Below, piece after piece: positions 34,769-51,126 of a stretch of DNA of 64,000 nt. Where the stretch lies: contig OZ116701.1 in assembly GCA_964199315.1 (NCBI GenBank), positions 33,294,001 to 33,358,000 of the forward strand, written 5' to 3'. This stretch comes from Orbicella franksi. Lineage: Eukaryota. Each line of letters opens with the position of its first letter. Position 1 is the stretch's first letter. The translations under genes were made by a program, and so were the position numbers. The notes below the pieces were generated by a model. That model did not search any database and was not told where the DNA came from. It was given only the letters and a program-made list of their open reading frames with translations.

Positions 34769-35211
34769 TTTGTACAGGTAATCATACGGTTTCGAGTTCA
34801 ATTTGGAATTAATTTGCACGAGTGAGTTTATCAAAAAGCTGAAATTGCACGAGCCGCTTTATAAACATGAAAACATTCGCGTGGAGGAAATGCCGGAAGA
34901 TCCCCCTCGAAGCCATTTTTATTCCTTTATTTCAGCCAATCAGAATCGAGTAATTTTTTCATGTATATTATTATAAGTAAAACACTTTCGTATGCATAAA
35001 TGGGCGTTCACAATGTAAGTTAAGTTTGCTCGAGGTCAAACGCCTAGCTCCACGATGTGTTGTATTCCATTTGCAAAGGCAGAATATGTGAGAACGGAAG
35101 TTTTCAAACATAATTTTATGAGCCTGCACAACGAACGCTAACCGTCACATTTCTGGCTAGCTTTAGATTGTTGGAATCGACGCGAGAGTCTATCGTTCAG
35201 TCTCTATTGCA

Positions 35212-36126
35212 ATGCCTCTACAACCACTCTGGGAATCCCATGAAATGTACCAGAGGTCATTTCAGGCATTAATCGACAACTCAACGGCCAGAGGACCAGC
35301 TATCCTTAACTTTACACAAGACGGGATAAGGCAGGCCATGCTGAAAATTATTAACAAGATGAACATCGACGAGCCACTTAAAGTGTTGGGCATTGGGAGT
35401 GGAAGCGGAGAGAATAATCTCCTCATTCTTCAAACTATGGCGGATATCCTCGTATCACAGAAGAAGAAAAGACCTGCTATCCATAACGTGATCGTTGAGC
35501 CGAGCTCGGTTATCTTAGATCAATTCAAAATGAAGGCTTCTTCGCTGCCGTCATCATTAAAGAGCGTAGCCAATGTTTCCTTCGAATCGCAGCAGAAAAC
35601 GTTCAGTGAATTCAACCAAGAAACCTCCATCGAAAAGAAAAGTTTCGATTTTATTCATTTTGTCCACAGTATCCGTTACTCGGATCTGGAGCTTGCGCTG
35701 CGATCATGCTTCGAACAATGGCTAAAAGCTGAACACGGAGTCGTGGTTTGCTATGTTCATACCGAGAATTCATACCTTGCTAAAGTCAGTAAGAAGTTTA
35801 AAGGAAAATTGAGCTGTGGCTCGGAAGTTATGGCCTTCTACACGCATGAAGAGCTGGCTGCCATTGCGGAGAAAAACAGCTGGAATTATTGTGTCCCGCT
35901 AAAGGAAAAATATCAGATCAATGTGACGGCCTGCCTACTAAAGCAAACGTCAGCCGAGTCCGATCCGCTTATCGATTTCCTAAGTCATCAACAAAATTTC
36001 CGAGCAAATGCCGAGCAAGAATTGTTTAACAGTTGGATGGAGATGACCGAATCCTTGGCTTTCACGGACGACAACGATGAAAAGTTTGTTGCAGGGGAAA
36101 ATGCAGTAGTTATAATCAATAAGTAG
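35212..36126 (+). CDS. Histamine N-methyltransferase-like class I SAM-dependent methyltransferase, single coding exon, 304 aa
   Basis: Motif I KVLGIGSGSGE, VIVEPS and FDFIHFVHS parallel HNMT (ILSIGGGAGEID, VVEPS, DFIHMIQM). Orthology not established. Confidence 0.8.
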   Translation: MPLQPLWESHEMYQRSFQALIDNSTARGPAILNFTQDGIRQAMLKIINKMNIDEPLKVLGIGSGSGENNLLILQTMADILVSQKKKRPAIHNVIVEPSSVILDQFKMKASSLPSSLKSVANVSFESQQKTFSEFNQETSIEKKSFDFIHFVHSIRYSDLELALRSCFEQWLKAEHGVVVCYVHTENSYLAKVSKKFKGKLSCGSEVMAFYTHEELAAIAEKNSWNYCVPLKEKYQINVTACLLKQTSAESDPLIDFLSHQQNFRANAEQELFNSWMEMTESLAFTDDNDEKFVAGENAVVIINK

Positions 36127-37721: not shown

Positions 37722-38355
37722 TTATTTATGGATTATAACCACTGCATTTTCTACTTTTACAAACTTTTCACGCTGTCGTCCGCAAAAGCCAGCGATTCGA
37801 TCATCTCTATCCAACTGTGAAACAGTTCTTGCTCGGCATTCATGCGGAAATTTTGTTGCTGGGTCAGAAAATCGATAAGCGGGTCAGCCTCTGACGTTGG
37901 CTGTCGGAGGCAAGAGGTGACATTAATTTGAAATTGCTCTTTCACAGGTATAAAATACTTCCAGCCGTTTTTCTCAGCGATGGCAGCGACCTCTTGGTTC
38001 GTGTAAAAGGACATAACGGCAGGGAAGAAGCCTTCATTTTGAATTGATCTAAGAGAACCGAGCTCGGCTCAACGATCACGTTATGTATAGTAGGTGGTTT
38101 CTTCTTTTGTGATACTATGAGCTCCACCATAGTTTGAAGAATAAGGAGATCAATCTCGCCGCTTCCACTTCCAATGCCTAACACTTTGAGTGGTTTGTCG
38201 ATGTCAACCTTGTCGATAATTTTCGGCATGGCCTACCTTATCCCGTCCTGCGTAAAGTTAAGCATAGCTGGTCGTCTGACCGTTGAGTTGTCGATAAATG
38301 CCTGAAACGACCTTTGGTACATTTCATGGGATTTCCAAAGTGGGTCTAGAGGCAT
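37722..38355 (-). pseudogene. Inverted pseudogene copy of the HNMT-like gene
   Basis: Co-linear with 35212-36126. TAG at 38235-38233 (Gln in the intact copy), a 277-nt frameshifting deletion (intact positions about 35550-35826) and a 1-nt deletion near the 3' end. Confidence 0.9.
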
Positions 38356-38667
38356 TTTGCACTAAAGACTGAGAGAAGAGTGACACTAGTTAGAAATCAA
38401 ACGCCGCCGGAACTTGTCGCGCAAGAGATTATCAGCGGTCGTCAAATAATTAACGACAATTAAATGCACTGATGAGAGGGAATCGCAACCACCTCCCGCA
38501 GACGATGTTCTTATATGATTGATTGCCGGTAAAGATAAGAACCTAGATTGCGTTATCTACCTTAGAAAGGCCGAAGCCGAGCGCAGCACGGTCTGTGATG
38601 GTCTTTTCGGCAATGAGTTAAATGCACTCGGAACAATTGCTTTAGGAATATAGTAAGGGGAGATTCA

Positions 38668-38985
38668 ATGTACGTTATAAATTGTCATCAGCTTCTTGGA
38701 ACCGAAGGGCGCCATACTATGCCTTGTCCAACAAGGGTAGGTTTGGTGACTTTTGGGTCTGAAGACATGGTTGCCAACGCGGAGGAAGATCTCGCCACAA
38801 TAGCGATGGCAAGCGTGTGGATACATGACCTCATTAGACAGGAGTTTACAGTCGATGTAATTCCTTGCTTTAGAGAGTCTTCCAATCAGGGCGATCTCCC
38901 CATGGATTTCTTTAAAGAGCCGATAACTAGAAATAGACCAGGAGTGAAATTCTTGAAGGGAGAAATGGTAGCTCAGTGTAATTGA
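38668..38985 (+). CDS. Uncharacterised 105-aa ORF
   Basis: True ATG, TATA-like gaatatagtaa about 20 nt upstream, GC-richer than its flanks, globular-protein composition. No family recognised. Confidence 0.45.
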   Translation: MYVINCHQLLGTEGRHTMPCPTRVGLVTFGSEDMVANAEEDLATIAMASVWIHDLIRQEFTVDVIPCFRESSNQGDLPMDFFKEPITRNRPGVKFLKGEMVAQCN

Positions 38986-39166
38986 AAAGCGACAACCAGC
39001 TCCAGAATGCAACAATCCTGTTTTTGACGCTTGTAAAATCAACACGGTAAATGACTAAGAACTTACTACAAAATACACAGATTTGTTTCAATTACTTTTT
39101 TCCCCTATTCCAGTTGGTTACTGAAGAGATCAGTCCGAGAAGCAAAGGTACTGCTCCTTCCTAGAG

Positions 39167-39212
39167 CAACCTCGTTCCCGCCCCGCCCCCTCCCATTCCT
39201 GGGAACTAGGTT
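39167..39212. mobile_element. Tiny MITE (caacctcgttccc...gggaactaggttg); relatives at about 44797-44837 and 46541-46590
   Basis: Terminal inverted repeats visible directly in all three. Confidence 0.7.
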
Positions 39213-39329
39213 GTCTCCAGACGACATCGGTTCGACTGATATAACAATGAAGAAAGGTTGATTACTGTGTGGAACGCTTAACGGGACAACGACATGATAG
39301 AGTCCAACTGGGGAAAGCCAAGAATTGCA

Positions 39330-39374
39330 ACCGTGGACAGCTGTTTCGACCTGGTTGGGTCTCGTCAGCACGGT
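39330..39374 (-). ncRNA. Minimal type I hammerhead ribozyme (Penelope/retrozyme type)
   Basis: Minus strand: ACCGTG-CTGACGA-GACC-CAACCA-GGTC-GAAA-C-AGCT-G-TC^CACGGT. Perfect 6-bp stem I, 4-bp stem II, canonical core, GUC triplet, self-complementary ACAGCTGT stem III. Confidence 0.9.
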
Positions 39375-39539
39375 GTAGCATGCAGCACGAAATGAAGGAA
39401 CCGGCTGGCTGACCGATCGTCCACCAAACGCACAGGATGGAAATGCCAAAAATAGAAACATAGCAATGAAGCGAGGCTGATTACAGTCCTACCTACACCG
39501 GCAGTATTTTCGTTTGCGGTCTCTTGCATCACTGTATTT

Positions 39540-42500
39540 AGTTCAACTAATCAATGACGCGTTTATTCTCTTTGTGAACTTAGTTTACCAACTTGCTGCA
39601 TTATTTGATCTTTCATTAACAATAAATAGGCAGTTGTCATTAATTTAATTTTCTTTACTAGAAATAATTGACTCCATGTTGACGTAATGTGACTGGGCAT
39701 CTGAAATGTCATCAGTCAAGGAGCGAGCGACCAAGCTAATAAACGAAAATCTAGTTTATAACTGAAAAGAATAAAGTACTGAGTAAAAGCCAATTTATCA
39801 AACATCAATAAACAAAATATCCTGGCCGAACTCAGCTAGTTTTATGGCTCGTTCGCAACAAAAGATCGTCGGAGTGGCATAATTCAAGACTAACCGAAAA
39901 AATAACGAAGTGTCAATATGCTTTTGATTAGTTTTGCTCAAATTAGTAACAAAAGAAAGACTTCTACGGAAACTGATAAGAACAAGCGTAATTAATTAAT
40001 CCCTCTAGTGACTCGGACAAATCCTATTTCATGTGGTGATGCTGGGATTGCGAGTGGCATACACGGTACATTAGAAAACCCAGTTGAAGGAGAGGGGAGG
40101 GGTGGGGAAGGGGTGTAACGCCTCGTACGTGATTTGTATTGAAAGAGTGCTCGGTTCTAAAAATCCTTAGTCTATTTCAAATTAAAAGATGCGATTTTTT
40201 TTAACTCTTCAAGCCAGTTCATCTATTGCATACTGATGAGTGATGATGAATGAACTGATTTTGGCTGAATACAAGAGACCGCTTTCAGCAATATTAACTT
40301 TTTTGTGTTCTATTTTCTGCCTCAGTTTTTGTTTGAAGAGTAAATACTTTTAAAAAATATCTAAAGAAGTACAGTTTCAGTTTACAGACCCTTCTACAAC
40401 AGTGAGCAGCCCAAAACCCACACGCTTTTGCCGCATCCAGCAAGCGGCTGATAGAAGTGATTACCCACCCTTCCCATCCTAAGGTGATAATAAATTATGT
40501 TCCTGACCGTGACTCATTGTGATTCCGTGGCGCAGGGATTAAGAACTATTGTTGAACGGTCATCAGTCGGAACAAACACGATTCCTTGCTAAAGGAATTA
40601 AGAAGCCTATGAGATGAGATAAAGTGTTGTTAATCAGCAGGAGCAACAAAGCAGCTAAAGAGCAACAAAGCAACTAAAGCTCGGTAAGTTGCGTTATATA
40701 CTTTCAACAATTTACAATTTATATTAAAACCGTTTTTCTATAGTTTTATGTCTGTAAAGATATCGACCCTCTCGTTGCGTCAAACAATGAGTTCCCTTTT
40801 AGGCAGTTTCGAGCTCAACTCACTTCATTTGCGACATGGCTAAACGAGGTGTTTTTTTGTTGTTGTTGTTTTTTCGTTTTGCTTGGTATTGGCATGATTT
40901 TGTTTACTTCCTAAATTCAAACTGCATAAAAATTTGATGGACAATCGACCCTTTTCAAATGTTTCGGTCATATCGATGAAAAAAAGCGTTTAACTTGACT
41001 GACAATGTTCTTTTCCGGAGTGGTCTGTTTCCGTCGGTTTTATTAAATCGTTTTTTTTTTTTTGATTATCATCAAAAATTGATTAGGACCTTGATTTGGT
41101 TGAAAATCATGCATCAATAGCATGCGGGCGCAAAACCATTATGTCATGACGCCAGCACCCGCAGATCGCAGCCCGAAGCATCGGTATCATAAACGAAACA
41201 GATTGAGCTGCTGTTTACTTATTTGGCCGGCCGAGGACAGTGTGTTTGCTGAGCCGCAAGATTAAAATGGAAAACCATTCTCAAACGGAGGTCAAAGAAT
41301 TCAATTGCTTTAAGAGAACACGTTAATCCGACGAAAAAATAAACAAATAAATCAAACAACCTTTTCAAGTGCCATCTTGGTCTGTCCTTCTGCTAATTAC
41401 AAACACTATTTACAATAACTTAAGAATAATCAAGATGCCGGGACCCACATATTAAGACTAAACGACAGAAAGTAAACAAGACCAAAAGAAAGTACACTTT
41501 ACATAAATTAAAAGCAATCAGCCTCGAGACTACACTGATTGGAAACCATAATTCTCAAACGTTCTTAATTGATTCAAACGCTGAACTTTTCATGTACTTA
41601 ATTCAATGTATTTGGTTCGGCTCATGGAAAGTTCGGCGTCTGAACTGGGCCTTAGTCTGTCTGGTCGTCTGCTAATTACAAACACAACTAAATTGTATTT
41701 ACAATAGCTTAAGAATAGTCAAGCTGCCGGGACCCACAAACTAAAACTAAACGACAGAAACTAAACAAGGCCAAAAGAAAGTACACTTTACATAAATTAA
41801 AAGGACCGAGCCGCGAGATTAGACTGATTGAAAGCCATAATTCTCAAACGGAGATCAAACAGGTCAAAGAATTAATTGCTTTTAATTACAAACCACAATA
41901 ATCCAGCGAAAATATAAATCAAATGAGACAAACAGCCTTTTCAAATTTAGGTCTGTCTAGCCTTCTGCTAATTACAAACATTGTTTGCAATAACTTAAGG
42001 ATAATTTGGATGCATCCCACATTTAAACTAAACTGGATGTAGCTCTCGCTAAGTGCCAACGAGCAACCAATCAAAACAAATACTAATTGGCAACTTAAAA
42101 AAAGTCATGTTTTGTGCACCTCACTTTTTTGAAGTCAAGGATTCAAAACAACGTCAAATGTCTTAAATTCAGATGTAAATATTTTGATTGACAGCGCAGA
42201 ATCGCCAAAACGAAAATAAGATTCTTGGTTTTAAATCATCGCGATACTACGGTTTCGGCTGTAATGATAACTAACATCGTTTTCTTCCCTTTCTAAAAAT
42301 TATCTGGAAAATTGAATAATATAACAACAAAAGAATACAGAACAAAAATGAAGCGCCAACAATAACTTCTTGTACGGTACTATGCAAGTCAGATTTACAC
42401 AAACTTACATGTCTTTCGTGTCAAACAATGTATTTAAGCTATAAACGGTAACAATTTCAATTATATAACGTCCTCTGACAAAGAACAATAGAAGTCTACA

Positions 42501-44313
42501 TTTCATTGACCAACAGCTTGGTTTGAGGATTTACAGAAACTTACGTGCATTTCGTTCCGAGGCTTGTTGTATAGATTAGTCAAATATATAACATATGAGC
42601 ATAAAAGTAACAAAATATTTCAAATAAATAAAGTCCTTCGTAGTCGAACAGCTGGCAAAGGATATGCGCAAACTGTTTGCTTTGGGACGCTTGGGCCAGT
42701 TGGACGTTAACGGTATTAAACAACTTCAATTATAAATCTCAGTTGCTTTGATTGCTTTTTGCTCGCTGGCGGTGACAAATTTGGCTCACTGGCAGATGTC
42801 GAGTTTTCTCTCGTGTGGCTCGCAGGCCGATAGTTTGCAACAGTTGTCGTTTGTTTTAGCTTAGCTTTGATTGAATTCAGTTTAAAGAGGTTTCTTTGAT
42901 TGCTTTATGCCCGCTGGCGTTGTCTAGATTTGGCACGCTGGCCGAATTTGGCACACTGGCCGAGTTTGGCATGGTGGCCGAGTACTCTTTTGGCTCGCTG
43001 GCCGATTGTTGAGCTTGCTAGCTCGATAAATATACCACAGTGGCACTTAACTAAAGTACACTCACGTAGAATTGGGAATAAAAACAAATAAAACTTACAA
43101 AAGCAGGTGAAAATTACGTTTTTCTTTCCTCAAACTTGATCAAAACTCCGCTCAATGAATGGCAAAGCTGCTGAGAATCGACGATCACAACCATGCGGGC
43201 TTGACGTCACAATCTCTGCGCGCTACGATTGGTCCGTTGTAAGACAATCGACCTTTTCCACTACGTCATTGGAATCTCAGGAATCTTGCCTTACAACATA
43301 GTAGAGGGGAATGGTTATAAACATGTCTCTCGATCACTCGAGATTTTTTCCGCCTGCACAGTACTTTCGCACGGCTCTATAATGCTGCCGCCTCGCCAGC
43401 CTCGCGTCTTCGCTCGGCTGGCTCGTTGGCAATAATAGACAAAAGACAATAAAAGGGGACGTGCGAGCATCTTTGCGCGAAAGATTTCCATTGCATTAGT
43501 CTAAAAAGATTCTGACAATGTAAGAAAACTAACTCTTACCCATCAATTGCATGGTTTTCTCTTCAACAGCTTGTAGAAAAGTTGACAGTAGCCCCTAAAA
43601 TAAAAATCCAATCAACGCCAAGTGCCGATAAAATGGCTCTGACCGCCGAAGGAGGACTGATGTTGTTGATCAACTTCGCTGCGTTTACAGGGAATTTGCT
43701 GATGTGTTTTATTTTGTACAAGAAGCCAAGTTTCCACACAACTGCAAACACATTCACTCTGTCTTTGACCATTTGTCACGTGTTTACCTCTTGCCTGGTC
43801 ATGCCGTTCACCGCGGGCTCACTGGTGGCGGGAGAGTGGATGTTTGGACAGACTTTGTGCGACATTCAGGGATTCGTGTTCCTCACCTTAACATGGGTGC
43901 CTTTGCAGTTGCTGACAATCATGGTGGCGCGTCGATATTTAAACATCACCCAGTTGTTATCCCACAATAAGTGGTTCTCGCTTAACCGATCCACTGGAAT
44001 GGTTTTGACAATCTGGGTATTCGATGTAGTCGTGCTGATGTTTCTCGCAATACTTGGTGGCACCGCGTTTCAATTTTCTCCAAAACGATCATTGCTCTGC
44101 ACTAGGCCCTTGAGCCGTGAAAACCAAACTGTAAACATATTTAATACAGTGATTACATCGGCCCTTTACATAGCTCTGTTAATTATCTCCATCATGGCAT
44201 TGTGCGCTATCAGAAGACATGAAGCCACCTTTCGGGCTAGGAGAAGAATTACCCCGTTCGACATGAGATCAGCTGCTGAAGCAAAGATAACAGATAAAGT
44301 TTTGTTAGCCCTT
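39540..44313 (+). repeat. Left arm of a large inverted segmental duplication
   Basis: Reverse-complement matches block by block to 47146-50520, e.g. 39541-39600 with 50455-50520, 40260-40370 with 49660-49770, 41650-42030 with 48000-48390, and 43440-44313 with 47146-47980. Confidence 0.9.
42030..43435. mobile_element. About 1.4 kb segment present only in the left arm, probable DNA-transposon-like insertion
   Basis: Absent from the right arm, where the homologues of 42030 and 43435 are adjacent (about 47975-48000). Inverted 11-mer tgccaacgagc at 42054-42064 and gctcgttggca at 43421-43431. Internal 18-bp tandem repeats at 42929-43006. Confidence 0.55.
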
Positions 44314-47145: not shown

Positions 47146-47836
47146 AAGGGCTAACAAAACTTTATCTGTTCTTTTTTCTTCGGCAGCTGATCTCACGTCG
47201 ACCAGGGTAAGTCTTCTTCTCGCTCGAAAGGTGGCTTCATGTCTTCTGATAGCGCACAACGCCACGATGGAGATAATCAGGATTAACAGCGCTATGTAAA
47301 TGGCCAATGTAATCACTGTATTAAATATGTTTACAATTTGGTTTTCACGGCTCAAGGGCCTAGTGCAGAGCAATGATCGTTTTGGAGAAAATTGAAACGT
47401 AGTGTCACCAAGTATTGTGGGAAAAATCAGCTCGACTACATCTCATTAATACCCAGATTAAGCGAGAACCACTTATTGTGGGATAACAACTGGGTAATGT
47501 TTAAAAATCTACGCGCCACCATGATTGTCAGCAACTACAAAAGCACCCATGTTAAGGTGAGGAACACGAATCCCTGAATGTCGCACAAAGTCTGTCCAAA
47601 CATCTACTCTCCCGCCACCAGTGAGCCCGCGGTGAACGGCATGACCAGGCAAGAGGTAAACACGTGTTTGCAGTTGAGTGGAAACGCGGCTTCTTGTACA
47701 AAACAAAACAAATCAGCAAATTCCCTGTAAACACAGCGAAGTTGATCAACAGCATCAGTCCTCCTTCGACGGTCAGAGTCATGATTTTATCGGCACTTGG
47801 CGTTGATTGGATTTCTATTTTGTGGGCTACTGTCAA
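47146..47836 (-). pseudogene. Truncated, frameshifted inverted copy of the GPCR at 43633-44559
   Basis: 28-nt deletion after STANT at a CAC microhomology. Homology stops at DKVLLAL (about 47146), so most of TM6 and all of TM7 are missing. Confidence 0.9.
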
Positions 47837-48389
47837 CTTTTCTGCAAGCTGTTGAAAAGAGAATCATGAAATTGCTGGGTAATAAATACTTTTCTTACAT
47901 TGTCAGAATCTTTATAGACTAATGCAATGGAAATCTTTCGCGCAAAGATGCCCACTCATCAACTTTTGTTGTCTTTTGGCCTTGTTATAATAGTTTCCAT
48001 TATTTAGTTTTAATGTGGGATGTATCTTAATTATCTCTAAGTTATTGCAAATAATGTTTGTAATTAGCAGAGGGCTAGACAGACCAAGATGGCTCTTTAA
48101 AAGGTTGTTTGTTTTATTTGATTGACAATTTCGCTGGATTATTGCGGTCTGTATTTAAAAGTAATTTAGTCCTTTAGCCTGTTTGATCTCCGTTTGAGAA
48201 TTACGGTTTTTAATCAGTCTAATCTCGCGACTCGGTTCTTTTAATTTATGTAAAGTGTACTTTCTTTTGGCCTTGTTTAGTTTCTGTCGTTTAGTTTTAG
48301 TTTGTGGGTCCCGGCATCTTGATTATTCTTAAGCTATTGTAAATACAATTAAGTAGTGTTTGTAATTAGCAGACGACCAGACAGACTAA

Positions 48390-48794
48390 GGCCCAGTTCA
48401 GACGCCGAACTTTCCATGAGCCGAACCAAATACATTGAATTAAGTTCATGAAAAGTTCGGCGTTTGAATCGAATTAAGAAGGGCTATTCGAATTTGGAAC
48501 AGCCAGCCGTTCTTCCCGCCTAGCTTATCCGGGAATTTTGGGCTTGGAACGGCTTTGATTCAGAGGTCGAACTTTTCCTGAGCCGAACCTAATGCATAAA
48601 TTATTATAAGGTATTTTCCAAGCAGTTTTCAGTTTGCCTGAAAATCGCTGACACTTCGATGTGATTTAGTTTAAACTAAATAAAGTTCGGTGAATTAAGT
48701 TCGACGTCTGAATCAACAGGTGTACTTTTGATAATTTGGGTCGGTCGATCCAAATTCGAATTAAGTTCGGCTCATGAAAAGTCTGAACTGGGCC
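48390..48794. mobile_element. PIF/Harbinger-type MITE with TAA TSD
   Basis: TIRs ggcccagttcagac / gtctgaactgggcc, flanked by TAA at 48387-48389 and 48795-48797. Only one end (about 41566-41652) survives in the left arm. Confidence 0.85.
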
Positions 48795-51126
48795 TAAGAT
48801 GGCACTTTAAAAGTTTGTTTGTTTTTTTTTCATTTATATTTTTCGCTGGATTGTCGTGTGGTCTCTGAAAGTAATTAAATTCCTTGACCTCCGTATGACT
48901 CCGTTTGAAAATGGTTAATTAATCTTGTGGCACAACAAACACTATTCTCGAGTCAAGACTGTTTTCACCAGCACAATCCGTTTCGTTTATGATACCGTTG
49001 CTACGGCTGCGATCGGTGGAAGCTGGCCCTGTGACATATTTCGAGTCTGCTCAATTGTTATATATTTCAAACCAATCCAGGACCTTATAAAGTTTTAATG
49101 ATGACCTCAAAAAATATTTAATAAAACCGATAGAAAAAAAGAAAACACTCCAAAAAGAACATTATCAGTAAAGTGATAAACTTTGTAGTCTCAGTCAGCG
49201 ATGTAACCAAAACATTTCAAAACGGTCGATTGTCCCCACAGATGTGCTGAGCAGTTTGAATTTGAGAAAGCAAGGGAAATACAAAGAAATTTACTCGTAA
49301 CCATATTATGGAAGTTAGTTGAGTTCGGAACTGTCTAAAATTGACGCAGCGTGGAGAGATATAAAAGTGGTATATCATAACGTACCGAGATTTAGTTGCT
49401 TCTGCAATCAGTTTGTTGCTCCTGTTGATTAATTAACAACATTTTATATGTAATGTGCCTTAGGTTCTTAATTCCTTTAGTCACGGAATCGTTGTTCCGG
49501 CTGATTACCGATGAACAACAGTTCTTAATGCCACGATACGAACATAGCTTATTACCTCAGGATCGCGGGGGGGGGGGGGGGGGAGGGAGGGTGGGTATTC
49601 ACTTATATAGGCCGCGTACTTGCTGCTGCAAGCTCTCCCGGGCTGAAAAAGAGTCTGGTTTAAAAACTGCTAAATAGTTCTTTAGATACTTTTTTTTATG
49701 AATAGTTACTCGATCTTCAACCAAAAACTGACAGAAAATAAAACACATAATAAAAGGTTAATATTGAAATGGTTAGAAAAAAAAATGCCAGTACTTCCTG
49801 AAGAGTAAAGGTCACAAACAAATCACATCTTTTTATCTGAAGTGTATTTTAATACAAATTACGAGGGGTTACACTCCTTCCACCCTCCACACCCCATCTC
49901 CTCCCTTCAACCGGGTTTACTTATCATATCAATTTTTGAAATAGGATTTGTCCGAGTCAAAAGAAGGATTAATTACGCTCGTTCTTCTCAGTTTCCGCGA
50001 ACAGTAAAAAGTCTTCCTTTTGTTGTCTAATGTATTTTTTCATTTATTCGTTTGATTGTTATTAATTTGAGCAAAACTAATCAAGAGAAACTGACACTTC
50101 ATTAGTGTTTTCCTTCAATGAGTCTTGCATAATGCCATTCAACCGATCTTTTGTTGCGAATTTCTTTTGTTGATTATGACGTTTACACGAGGCCAGCTGA
50201 TTTCGGCTAGGATATTTTGTTGAATGATGTTTGATAAATTAGCTTTTACTCTGCCAGACCTTTACTCCTTTCAGTTTTTATACCAGTTTTAAACTAGTCA
50301 CTCCTTTATTAACTTGCTCGCTCGCTCTTTGACTGATGTCATTTCAAATGCCGAGGCACATTACGCCAATATGGAGTAAATTAATTCGTGTAAAGGAAAT
50401 TAAATTAATGACAACTTCGTAGTAAGTGCCAATGGATGATCATATAAGACAGCAAGCTAGTAAACAGAGTTCACAAATGGTTGCTAAAGAGAGTAAATGC
50501 GTCGTTGATCAGTTGAACGCACGCGTCAACCAATCCAAGAGGAGGTCGCCTGGACCGAAGTCTCTCCGAAGCAAGCTGTTACATTGATTGCAAATTCCTT
50601 TCTAATTGGGTCATATATCCACGCTCTTTACATCGATATCCAGGCAAGATATCCCTTCGCGGTGTAGACAACCATAGCTTTCGACACAAGCCGCGCACCC
50701 TACGCTTATTTGGTTTGCATTGAACAAGCAGCTGATGACAATCAGCTGCTTCATGAGGTACCAAGATCCTGTTTTGTGGGCGTTGCTTGGAATTTTTTTC
50801 ACCCCTAAGAGGTACAATTCTAAAACAACACATTATATCATGTCATACTTTTTTGGCCCTATCCCCTAAAAGGTTCTGCAAAAGCTCCCGCTGTGGACCT
50901 TTTGAGACTGCACGCTATAAGAGCTACCAAAACCGCTATTTCAATCTCTAAAAGGTACTACGAGCACCCCCGTCATTTTTATACGGATATCCTCCCCCAG
51001 GGGCTTCCACACCGTTCAGTTCAGTCATTCCAAGATCTTTCACTACTTCCGTTACTGTAGAACAAAATGCTGTGTAGGTACACTTGATTATCAGTTCTCT
51101 CACACTGCGAAGTTTTCTCAAAGTGA

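Follow-up and report, generated by a model that had tools for sequence, protein, structure and literature searches.

The window analysed here, a 64,000-nucleotide stretch of the Orbicella franksi genome, contains a 300-bp patchwork in which a hammerhead ribozyme on the minus strand is embedded in pieces of a dispersed repeat family, with short target-site duplications on both sides (Table 1). A cmscan search of the whole window against Rfam 15 returned one match, to RF00163 (Hammerhead_1, type I), which scored 49.8 bits (E 6.3e-10) where the gathering score is 34, and which covered model positions 1-45 of 45; neither a second hammerhead nor any other Rfam match was found in the 64 kb. The initial annotation of this DNA had described an intact type I hammerhead on this strand and had proposed type I models as the means of checking it, and on both points the search bears it out. 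Its statement that no RT ORF lies adjacent also stands: we detected no Penelope RT/EN similarity across the window, and no long ORF with such domains near the element.

Table 1. Features of the insertion and of the corresponding uninserted site (window coordinates)
Feature	Position	Strand	Evidence
Target-site duplication, left copy, GTTCGACTGAT, 11 bp	39230..39240		10/11 against the empty site, 9/11 against the right copy
Family unit, 5'-truncated, ending at the short 'class A' 3' terminus (39241)	39241..39445	-	47 scored genomic matches, 29 aligned copies
Type I hammerhead	39330..39374	-	RF00163, identity with the family majority, compensatory changes in helices I and II, dimer fold
Second copy (~42 nt) of 3'-region sequence and the first bases of the tail, same sense as the unit	39445..39487	-	Placement in other copies
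Inverted 'tail', on the strand opposite to the ribozyme; 39540 is the long 'class B' terminus	39488..39540	+	80-91% to class B tails, reversed orientation
Target-site duplication, right copy, GTTCAACTAAT	39541..39551		10/11 against the empty site
Uninserted paralogous site, a single GTTCAACTGAT with homologues of both flanks around it	50508..50518	-	Alignments with the other arm

In the cmscan alignment the catalytic core (CUGACGA, GAAA) and the GUC triplet are all intact and equal to the family majority. Helix I is ACCGUG/CACGGU (6 bp), helix II is GACC/GGUC (4 bp) closed by a 6-nt loop, CAACCA, and helix III consists of the palindrome ACAGCUGU, in which a palindromic loop sits on a 2-bp stem. 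The alignment puts C17 of the GUC at window 39336; cleavage is therefore predicted between 39336 and 39335, where the initial annotation had placed it. The same annotation called the hammerhead minimal, a term that is only loosely apt, as the helix sizes are those of canonical metazoan type I motifs and not of the minimal Penelope type. In fold predictions the isolated 45-mer misfolds (-14.9 kcal/mol), and two 45-mers form a double hammerhead joined by an 8-bp intermolecular helix III (-33.9 versus 2 x -14.9 kcal/mol), so that the self-complementary stem III claimed earlier is one that a dimer is predicted to form. These predictions agree with the dimer requirement of published motifs of this sort, for which single hammerheads did not cleave and dimeric constructs cleaved weakly (PMC4209133). 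The palindromic helix III is thus of a kind predicted to need a dimer for an active hammerhead.

The ribozyme belongs to a dispersed family. A genome search with window 39200-39500 gave at least 395 candidate copies; the 47 that were scored, spread over many contigs, were 78-90% identical to the window, and nearly all of these matches began at window 39239-39246. A ribozyme pattern allowing up to 3 mismatches had 283 genomic matches, those of a sister family included, compared with 0 for a reversed-pattern control. We fetched 29 copies and aligned them in the ribozyme sense (the window minus strand), with window 39420 as the anchor. Family homology spans about -250 to +264 around this anchor. 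The 5' ends are scattered (-4, -25, -59, -71, -106 and on to -251), and the 3' ends fall at two fixed termini, class A at the equivalent of 39241 and class B about 84 nt further on, the additional stretch being the tail. In at least 11 of the 29 loci an inverted partial copy or an inverted tail lies directly upstream, head to head. In three copies (L007, L014 and L023) a tail of the same sense stands 50-130 nt upstream of the 5' region, which makes them partial tandems; the one tandem array seen was that of the sister family, none being seen for the window's own. About 8 of the 29 copies reach a common 5' region near -270 to -300, where they diverge or meet a tail.

With a sister array of 526-nt period as a guide, the family unit is about 520-530 nt long; L007 by itself gives about 520-550 nt. 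Its order in the RNA sense is tail, a 5' region with CCAAT-like and CRE-like motifs, hammerhead and a 3' region of ~135 nt; in arrays, the tail of the next unit follows this 3' region. No Penelope protein similarity was found in 32 family loci, and the long ORFs beside family loci are host genes. A MITE or other DNA transposon was considered and rejected on two grounds, the asymmetry of the termini and the scatter of the 5' ends. The near-full but decayed copy L007 had a fold z-score of -2.8; the 300-nt window insertion, at +0.7, is not highly self-paired.

We assessed the hammerhead further in an alignment of the window sequence with 29 others, from copies of its own and the sister families (n = 30). 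Helix cells were paired in 94.3% of cases, against 23-39% when the 3' partners were slid, and the covariation score was 0.144 against 0.100 +- 0.009, a level reached by 0 of 500 shuffles. Changes on both sides occurred at two pairs: 3-43 in helix I, found as CG, AU and UA, and 15-26 in helix II, found as AU and CG, with a third form, UA, in further pattern matches and subfamily copies. Helix III was uninformative for covariation because it is invariant and palindromic. On these features of its sequence, the minus-strand motif is a genuine type I hammerhead.

The ribozyme had been said to be better preserved than its flanks, and the comparison with the family majority agrees. The window copy has 0 differences in the 45 ribozyme positions, against 9 of 87 on the 3' side and 19 of 67 on the 5' side, or 28 of 154 (~18%) outside the ribozyme. 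Across the family, divergence comes to 5.0% within the ribozyme and 11.3% elsewhere. Six of the 30 aligned copies, the window's included, are free of substitutions in the ribozyme columns, although one of these six has a 3-nt insertion in helix I. Many individual family copies have core changes that would be expected to inactivate the ribozyme, as expected of decaying insertions. Most simply, the preservation would reflect constraint on active master lineages, inherited by the window copy, and not constraint on this locus.

The architecture of the window copy can be read against an empty counterpart. A single GTTCAACTGAT aligns at 10 of 11 positions with the 11 nt before the element and at 10 of 11 with the 11 nt after it, with homology extending further to either side. 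This empty paralogous site, together with the 11-bp target-site duplication, marks the whole patchwork at 39241-39540 as one insertion. Its unit is truncated ~25 nt upstream of the anchor region, and the window copy consequently lacks the whole 5' part of the family. The ~42-nt fragment, which holds the second of two 28-mers described earlier (39460-39487), is flanked by GGCTGATTAC and its complement; because of this short inverted repeat its left boundary can be placed to within +-2 nt and its right boundary to within ~10 nt. Relative to the tail, the fragment is flipped from the orientation usual for inverted copies, and a strand switch at the hairpin during copying may have turned it around. 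Without a 5' part, and with no partner ribozyme for a dimer, the window copy is probably inert: its sequence suggests an old, dead insertion, without a promoter part or another ribozyme in the 64 kb, which should neither cleave efficiently nor give a circle.

The surroundings of the element are themselves duplicated. BLAST identified an inverted duplication of ~39541-44313 against 50518-47146, with arms 70-97% identical, in which arm homology resumes at 39541, directly past the element. A more sensitive alignment extended the homology to the left of the element (38730-38908 against ~50710-50531), giving full arms of 38730-44313 and 47146-50710; BLAST had lost this part because of an extra block of ~311 bp (38909-39219) that the left arm has and the right arm lacks, and that occurs nowhere else in the genome. 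The element had been placed about 50 bp from the outer breakpoint of the duplication; it lies instead inside the left arm. Its left flank is unique in the genome. A shared target motif was considered between this flank and a flank of the sister array locus, which have similar short hairpins; the alignment score, 27, stays within what shuffles reach (maximum 29), and given this and the uniqueness of the flank we rejected the likeness as chance. Elsewhere in the neighbourhood, a 304-aa ORF at 35212-36126(+) has an inverted partial paralogue at 37757-38356(-), ~2 kb off, and the arms of an inverted repeat at 35211-35554 and 38013-38356 are 88% identical. One RNA contig of run X1 carries a 10-nt insertion, TTAACAATTA, relative to the window at 39570, just beyond the element, probably an allelic indel.

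The initial annotation had proposed a unit of ~219 nt, on the strength of 28-nt direct repeats at 39241-39268 and 39460-39487. The repeats are real: they are identical at 23 of 28 positions at offset 219, compared with 4-6 of 28 at neighbouring offsets, and in 200 shuffles of the surrounding 1 kb no 28-mer pair reached 23 (maximum 20). The unit is not. In other copies, sequence like 39445-39484 always comes directly after the equivalent of 39241 and never after the equivalent of 39445. None of the 22 other genomic matches to 39410-39490 crosses the junction at ~39445, all of them covering 39445-39484 only, and the junction is absent from all 29 fetched copies. The 28-nt repeat and its 219-nt spacing follow from the patchwork of inverted tail, 42-nt fragment and truncated unit. 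Thus what had been taken for slightly more than one unit, copied from a circular or tandem RNA, is a piece of the unit's 3' region upstream of a truncated unit and beside an inverted tail, and the 28-nt repeat is internal to a longer terminal structure of the Penelope type, with no unit junction, an outcome that the initial annotation had itself listed as refuting its reading. A pattern search of the genome, which bears on the earlier suggestion to look for tandem arrays of the 219-nt unit, found hammerhead-core pairs ~200-234 nt apart (start to start) at 31 places, all of them in other ribozyme families, among them a 216-nt tandem family with core CTGAAGAG and helix II TCTC/GAGA. As judged from all these copies, the 219-nt period is limited to this locus and is an accident of one insertion, not the family unit.

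The sister family provides a closed unit. Its ribozyme has helix I ACAGUG/CACUGU and helix II GCCC/GGGC, or GUCC/GGAC in one subfamily; these are compensatory changes. Self-BLAST of one locus (L061, G000:C1:44083000-44087000) revealed a young array (L061:779-2925, G000:C1:44083778-44085924) of about four 526-nt units, head to tail and 98.8-99% identical, with an intact hammerhead in each unit. Ahead of the array lies an inverted tail, which together with the first unit forms a 120-nt palindrome, and the array ends at a class A terminus. The array identifies the tail as the start of the next unit, and the unit, which has no ORF, therefore closes at 526 nt. Opened at the cleavage site of the ribozyme, a unit is predicted to fold at -197.5 kcal/mol (z -8.1). 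Tandem 526-nt units of such high structure make the lineage retrozyme-like, and the sister array is a candidate active retrozyme with a large unit. The earlier label of retrozyme-like element holds in part: the family is ORF-less and repeated and its sister forms a 526-nt tandem, whereas the locus itself has no head-to-tail tandem and one hammerhead in 64 kb. Beside a further sister copy (L063) lies a 656-aa ORF in which no Pfam domain was found.

The available RNA came from runs labelled "coral metagenome", with raw reads that were poly(A)-selected only. In poly(A) library X2, contigs over the element had a summed k-mer depth of 137-356 at 39240-39375, and the adjoining bins on both sides had 0, indicating that family members are transcribed. 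Run X24 contained 104 raw reads from family members, none of them 99% or more identical to the window copy. Loose ends in these reads, at 39327 and 39379, continue into sister-family sequence, and such reads therefore cross the cleavage site. These poly(A)-selected reads revealed no pile-up of molecule ends at any place and no back-joined form at the ribozyme site; the read "joints" that were listed mirror the architecture of other family copies. Low-depth RNA contigs match the locus exactly in X1 (39323-39651) and X2 (39384-39530). They could be weak read-through transcription; in X1, where the flanks are also covered, they may be either that or DNA carry-over. Run X1 also has a 3750-nt RNA contig that stops at 39202, about 40 nt short of the element.

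Marks of Penelope-like elements (PMC8557442) are a high rate of 5' truncation, arrangement in partial tandems, a 5'-truncated copy set in inverted orientation at the 5' end, and tail sequence on either side. The window's family displays variable 5' truncation, constant 3' ends, inverted copies or tails, a tail on either side and partial tandems. Autonomous Penelope-like elements that combine RVT_1 with GIY-YIG at the C terminus are abundant in this genome (L031-L060, L064-L103), one dominant family having near-identical copies on many contigs. There are at least 1018 GIY-YIG candidate loci, of which 150 were scored. One ORF (L058:1-2076), which served as the positive control for these domains, combines RVT_1 and GIY-YIG and has a minimal hammerhead ~200 nt 3' of the endonuclease; in 70 loci bearing the endonuclease we found at least five minimal hammerhead types ~200-600 nt 3' of the endonuclease, and none is that of the window. 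The partner Penelope RT with the same ribozyme that had been suggested was therefore not among the 70 endonuclease loci sampled. Nor did family units have nucleotide or protein similarity to these loci, 30 of which were compared directly and 40 more over 900 nt downstream. The sample consists of regions downstream of the endonuclease and so would miss elements with an N-terminal endonuclease (the Hydra clade), which are reported for A. millepora (bioRxiv 10.64898/2026.07.22.740005). No RT was found within 3.7 kb upstream of three further subfamily copies, and 0 of 100 listed ribozyme places lay within a few kb of the 149 listed GIY-YIG places.

We put the probability at roughly three in four that a single old insertion, now dead, accounts for 39241-39540, and that it comes from a short hammerhead retroelement family that is ORF-less, bears Penelope-type scars and was presumably mobilised in trans. 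Family RNA would have been copied by the RT/GIY-YIG machinery of Penelope-like elements, and target-primed reverse transcription by that machinery could account for truncation at the 5' end, for partial copies inverted head to head, and for tails and partial tandems. Where a transcript holds several units, two hammerheads may join by way of the palindromic helix III and cleave the RNA into unit lengths. The involvement of Penelope machinery is proposed from the architecture of the insertions.

Three other readings were weighed against this one. The insertion might be a solo pseudo-LTR, that is, the 5'-truncated 3' end of an autonomous Penelope-like element and not a member of a non-autonomous family. 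Hammerheads do lie a few hundred nt 3' of the endonuclease in the Penelope elements of this genome, whose diversity was sampled in part, and most Penelope copies are severely 5'-truncated (PMC8557442, PMC4209133). Against it, ~8 of the 29 copies reach the common 5' region and there diverge or meet a tail, the sister unit is closed at 526 nt without an ORF, and no RT/EN similarity was found in 32 loci, nor any RT in the 3.7 kb upstream of the three further copies; we regard this origin as unlikely. Less likely still is a retrozyme with a 219-nt monomer, in which a small RNA, circular or tandem, was the template for ~1.13 units and the repeats mark the unit junction. The 23/28 repeat is genuine, the lineage does form tandems, as the sister array demonstrates, and 219 nt is near both the 220-245-nt monomers of a published coral retrozyme (PMC7229834) and a 216-nt family in this genome. 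However, the junction is found at this locus alone, other copies run past both supposed ends to ~-250 and +264, and the sister array has a period of 526 nt; the ~200-234-nt hammerhead tandems have other ribozymes, and the published coral retrozyme, Amil224, differs from the window in both ribozyme and unit sequence. Moreover, a circle made by a hammerhead would be continuous, which leaves the inverted tail inside the target-site duplication unexplained.

The third reading, that the host keeps the ribozyme for a local function such as processing a neighbouring transcript, is the least credible of all. It would explain 0 differences within the ribozyme beside ~18% around it, and it could draw on the 3750-nt RNA contig that ends nearby and on the low-depth contigs that match the locus exactly. 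The ribozyme columns are conserved family-wide, though, with 6 of the 30 copies free of substitutions there; cleavage is not expected of a single such motif (PMC4209133), and poly(A) RNA-seq gave no pile-up of read ends at the cleavage site. Under the preferred reading, an insertion of an ORF-less family with Penelope-type scars, the locus itself matters little, being a dead transposon fragment in an intergenic stretch. It does carry a caution: terminal redundancy around a hammerhead may come from a complex insertion of the Penelope type and need not mark a circular template.

The kind of element found here is already described (PMC4209133, PMC7229834, PMC8557442, bioRxiv 10.64898/2026.07.22.740005), and several known systems come close to it. 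Newt satellite 2 and the Schistosoma Sm-alpha hammerheads (PMC4209133) likewise have a short palindromic helix III through which two neighbours form an active double hammerhead, but those are regular short tandem satellites, whereas the window motif is a lone one in a truncated retroelement. The 216-nt hammerhead family of this genome (L104-L109, e.g., G000:C5:10143320-10143759), with a very uniform ribozyme, is non-coding and has Penelope-type scars, as does the window's family; it differs in its ribozyme core and helix II and in having a true 216-nt tandem period, where the 219-nt spacing of the window is a one-off. A subfamily related to it, with core CTGATGAG and ribozymes ~217 nt apart (C2:11437069-11438161), also differs from the window family.

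The non-LTR retrozyme Amil224 of A. millepora (225/245 nt; Cervera & de la Pena 2020, PMC7229834) is similar in plan. Like the window's family, it is ORF-less, with one type I hammerhead per unit, a helix plan of 6 bp, 4 bp and a palindromic helix III, and a target-site duplication of more than 4 bp; the published Amil224 sequence has no similarity to the window family. An Amil224-type hammerhead with two loop-2 changes does occur in this genome (G000:C3:15127220-15127494), as two copies 241 nt apart, a spacing that matches the published monomers. As in metazoan retrozymes, the lineage can form head-to-tail arrays, as the sister family does, and the unit RNA is predicted to be highly self-paired, as in the sister unit. 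The family unit of ~520-530 nt is larger than the 170-400 nt of metazoan non-LTR retrozymes, and members of the window's family occur mostly as scattered single copies that are truncated, in contrast to the arrays of retrozymes, the window copy itself having no tandem.

With the hammerheads of Penelope pseudo-LTRs (Cervera & de la Pena 2014, PMC4209133) the family shares a type I motif near the 3' end of the unit and a short palindromic helix III that needs a dimer. Those hammerheads are mostly lone motifs of truncated copies, sometimes found as opposite-strand pairs 100-700 bp apart (PMC4209133), and copies of the window's family are likewise mostly lone and 5'-truncated, with some opposite-strand pairs. 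The inverted 5'-truncated copies, tails and partial tandems are also those of Penelope architecture (Craig et al. 2021, PMC8557442). The family departs from Penelope in having no RT/GIY-YIG ORF and no sequence in common with any sampled autonomous element; its tail is ~55-85 nt, compared with 30-40 in Penelope. The minimal Penelope hammerheads, including those of this genome's Penelopes, have a long helix II and a short helix I, in contrast to the 6-bp helix I and 4-bp helix II here.

The most interesting by-product of the analysis is the young 526-nt tandem sister family, which has the helix plan of the published coral retrozyme and yet every Penelope scar on insertion. We suggest tentatively, and with the balance of our judgement against it, that the two families may constitute a distinct cnidarian retrozyme lineage with an unusually large, ~526-nt monomer, hammerhead helices of canonical size and Penelope scars, which would still be active and whose arrays would give rise to rod-like circles of ~526 nt. 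If this is true, the lineage would provide a living link from Penelope pseudo-LTRs to the short non-LTR retrozymes.
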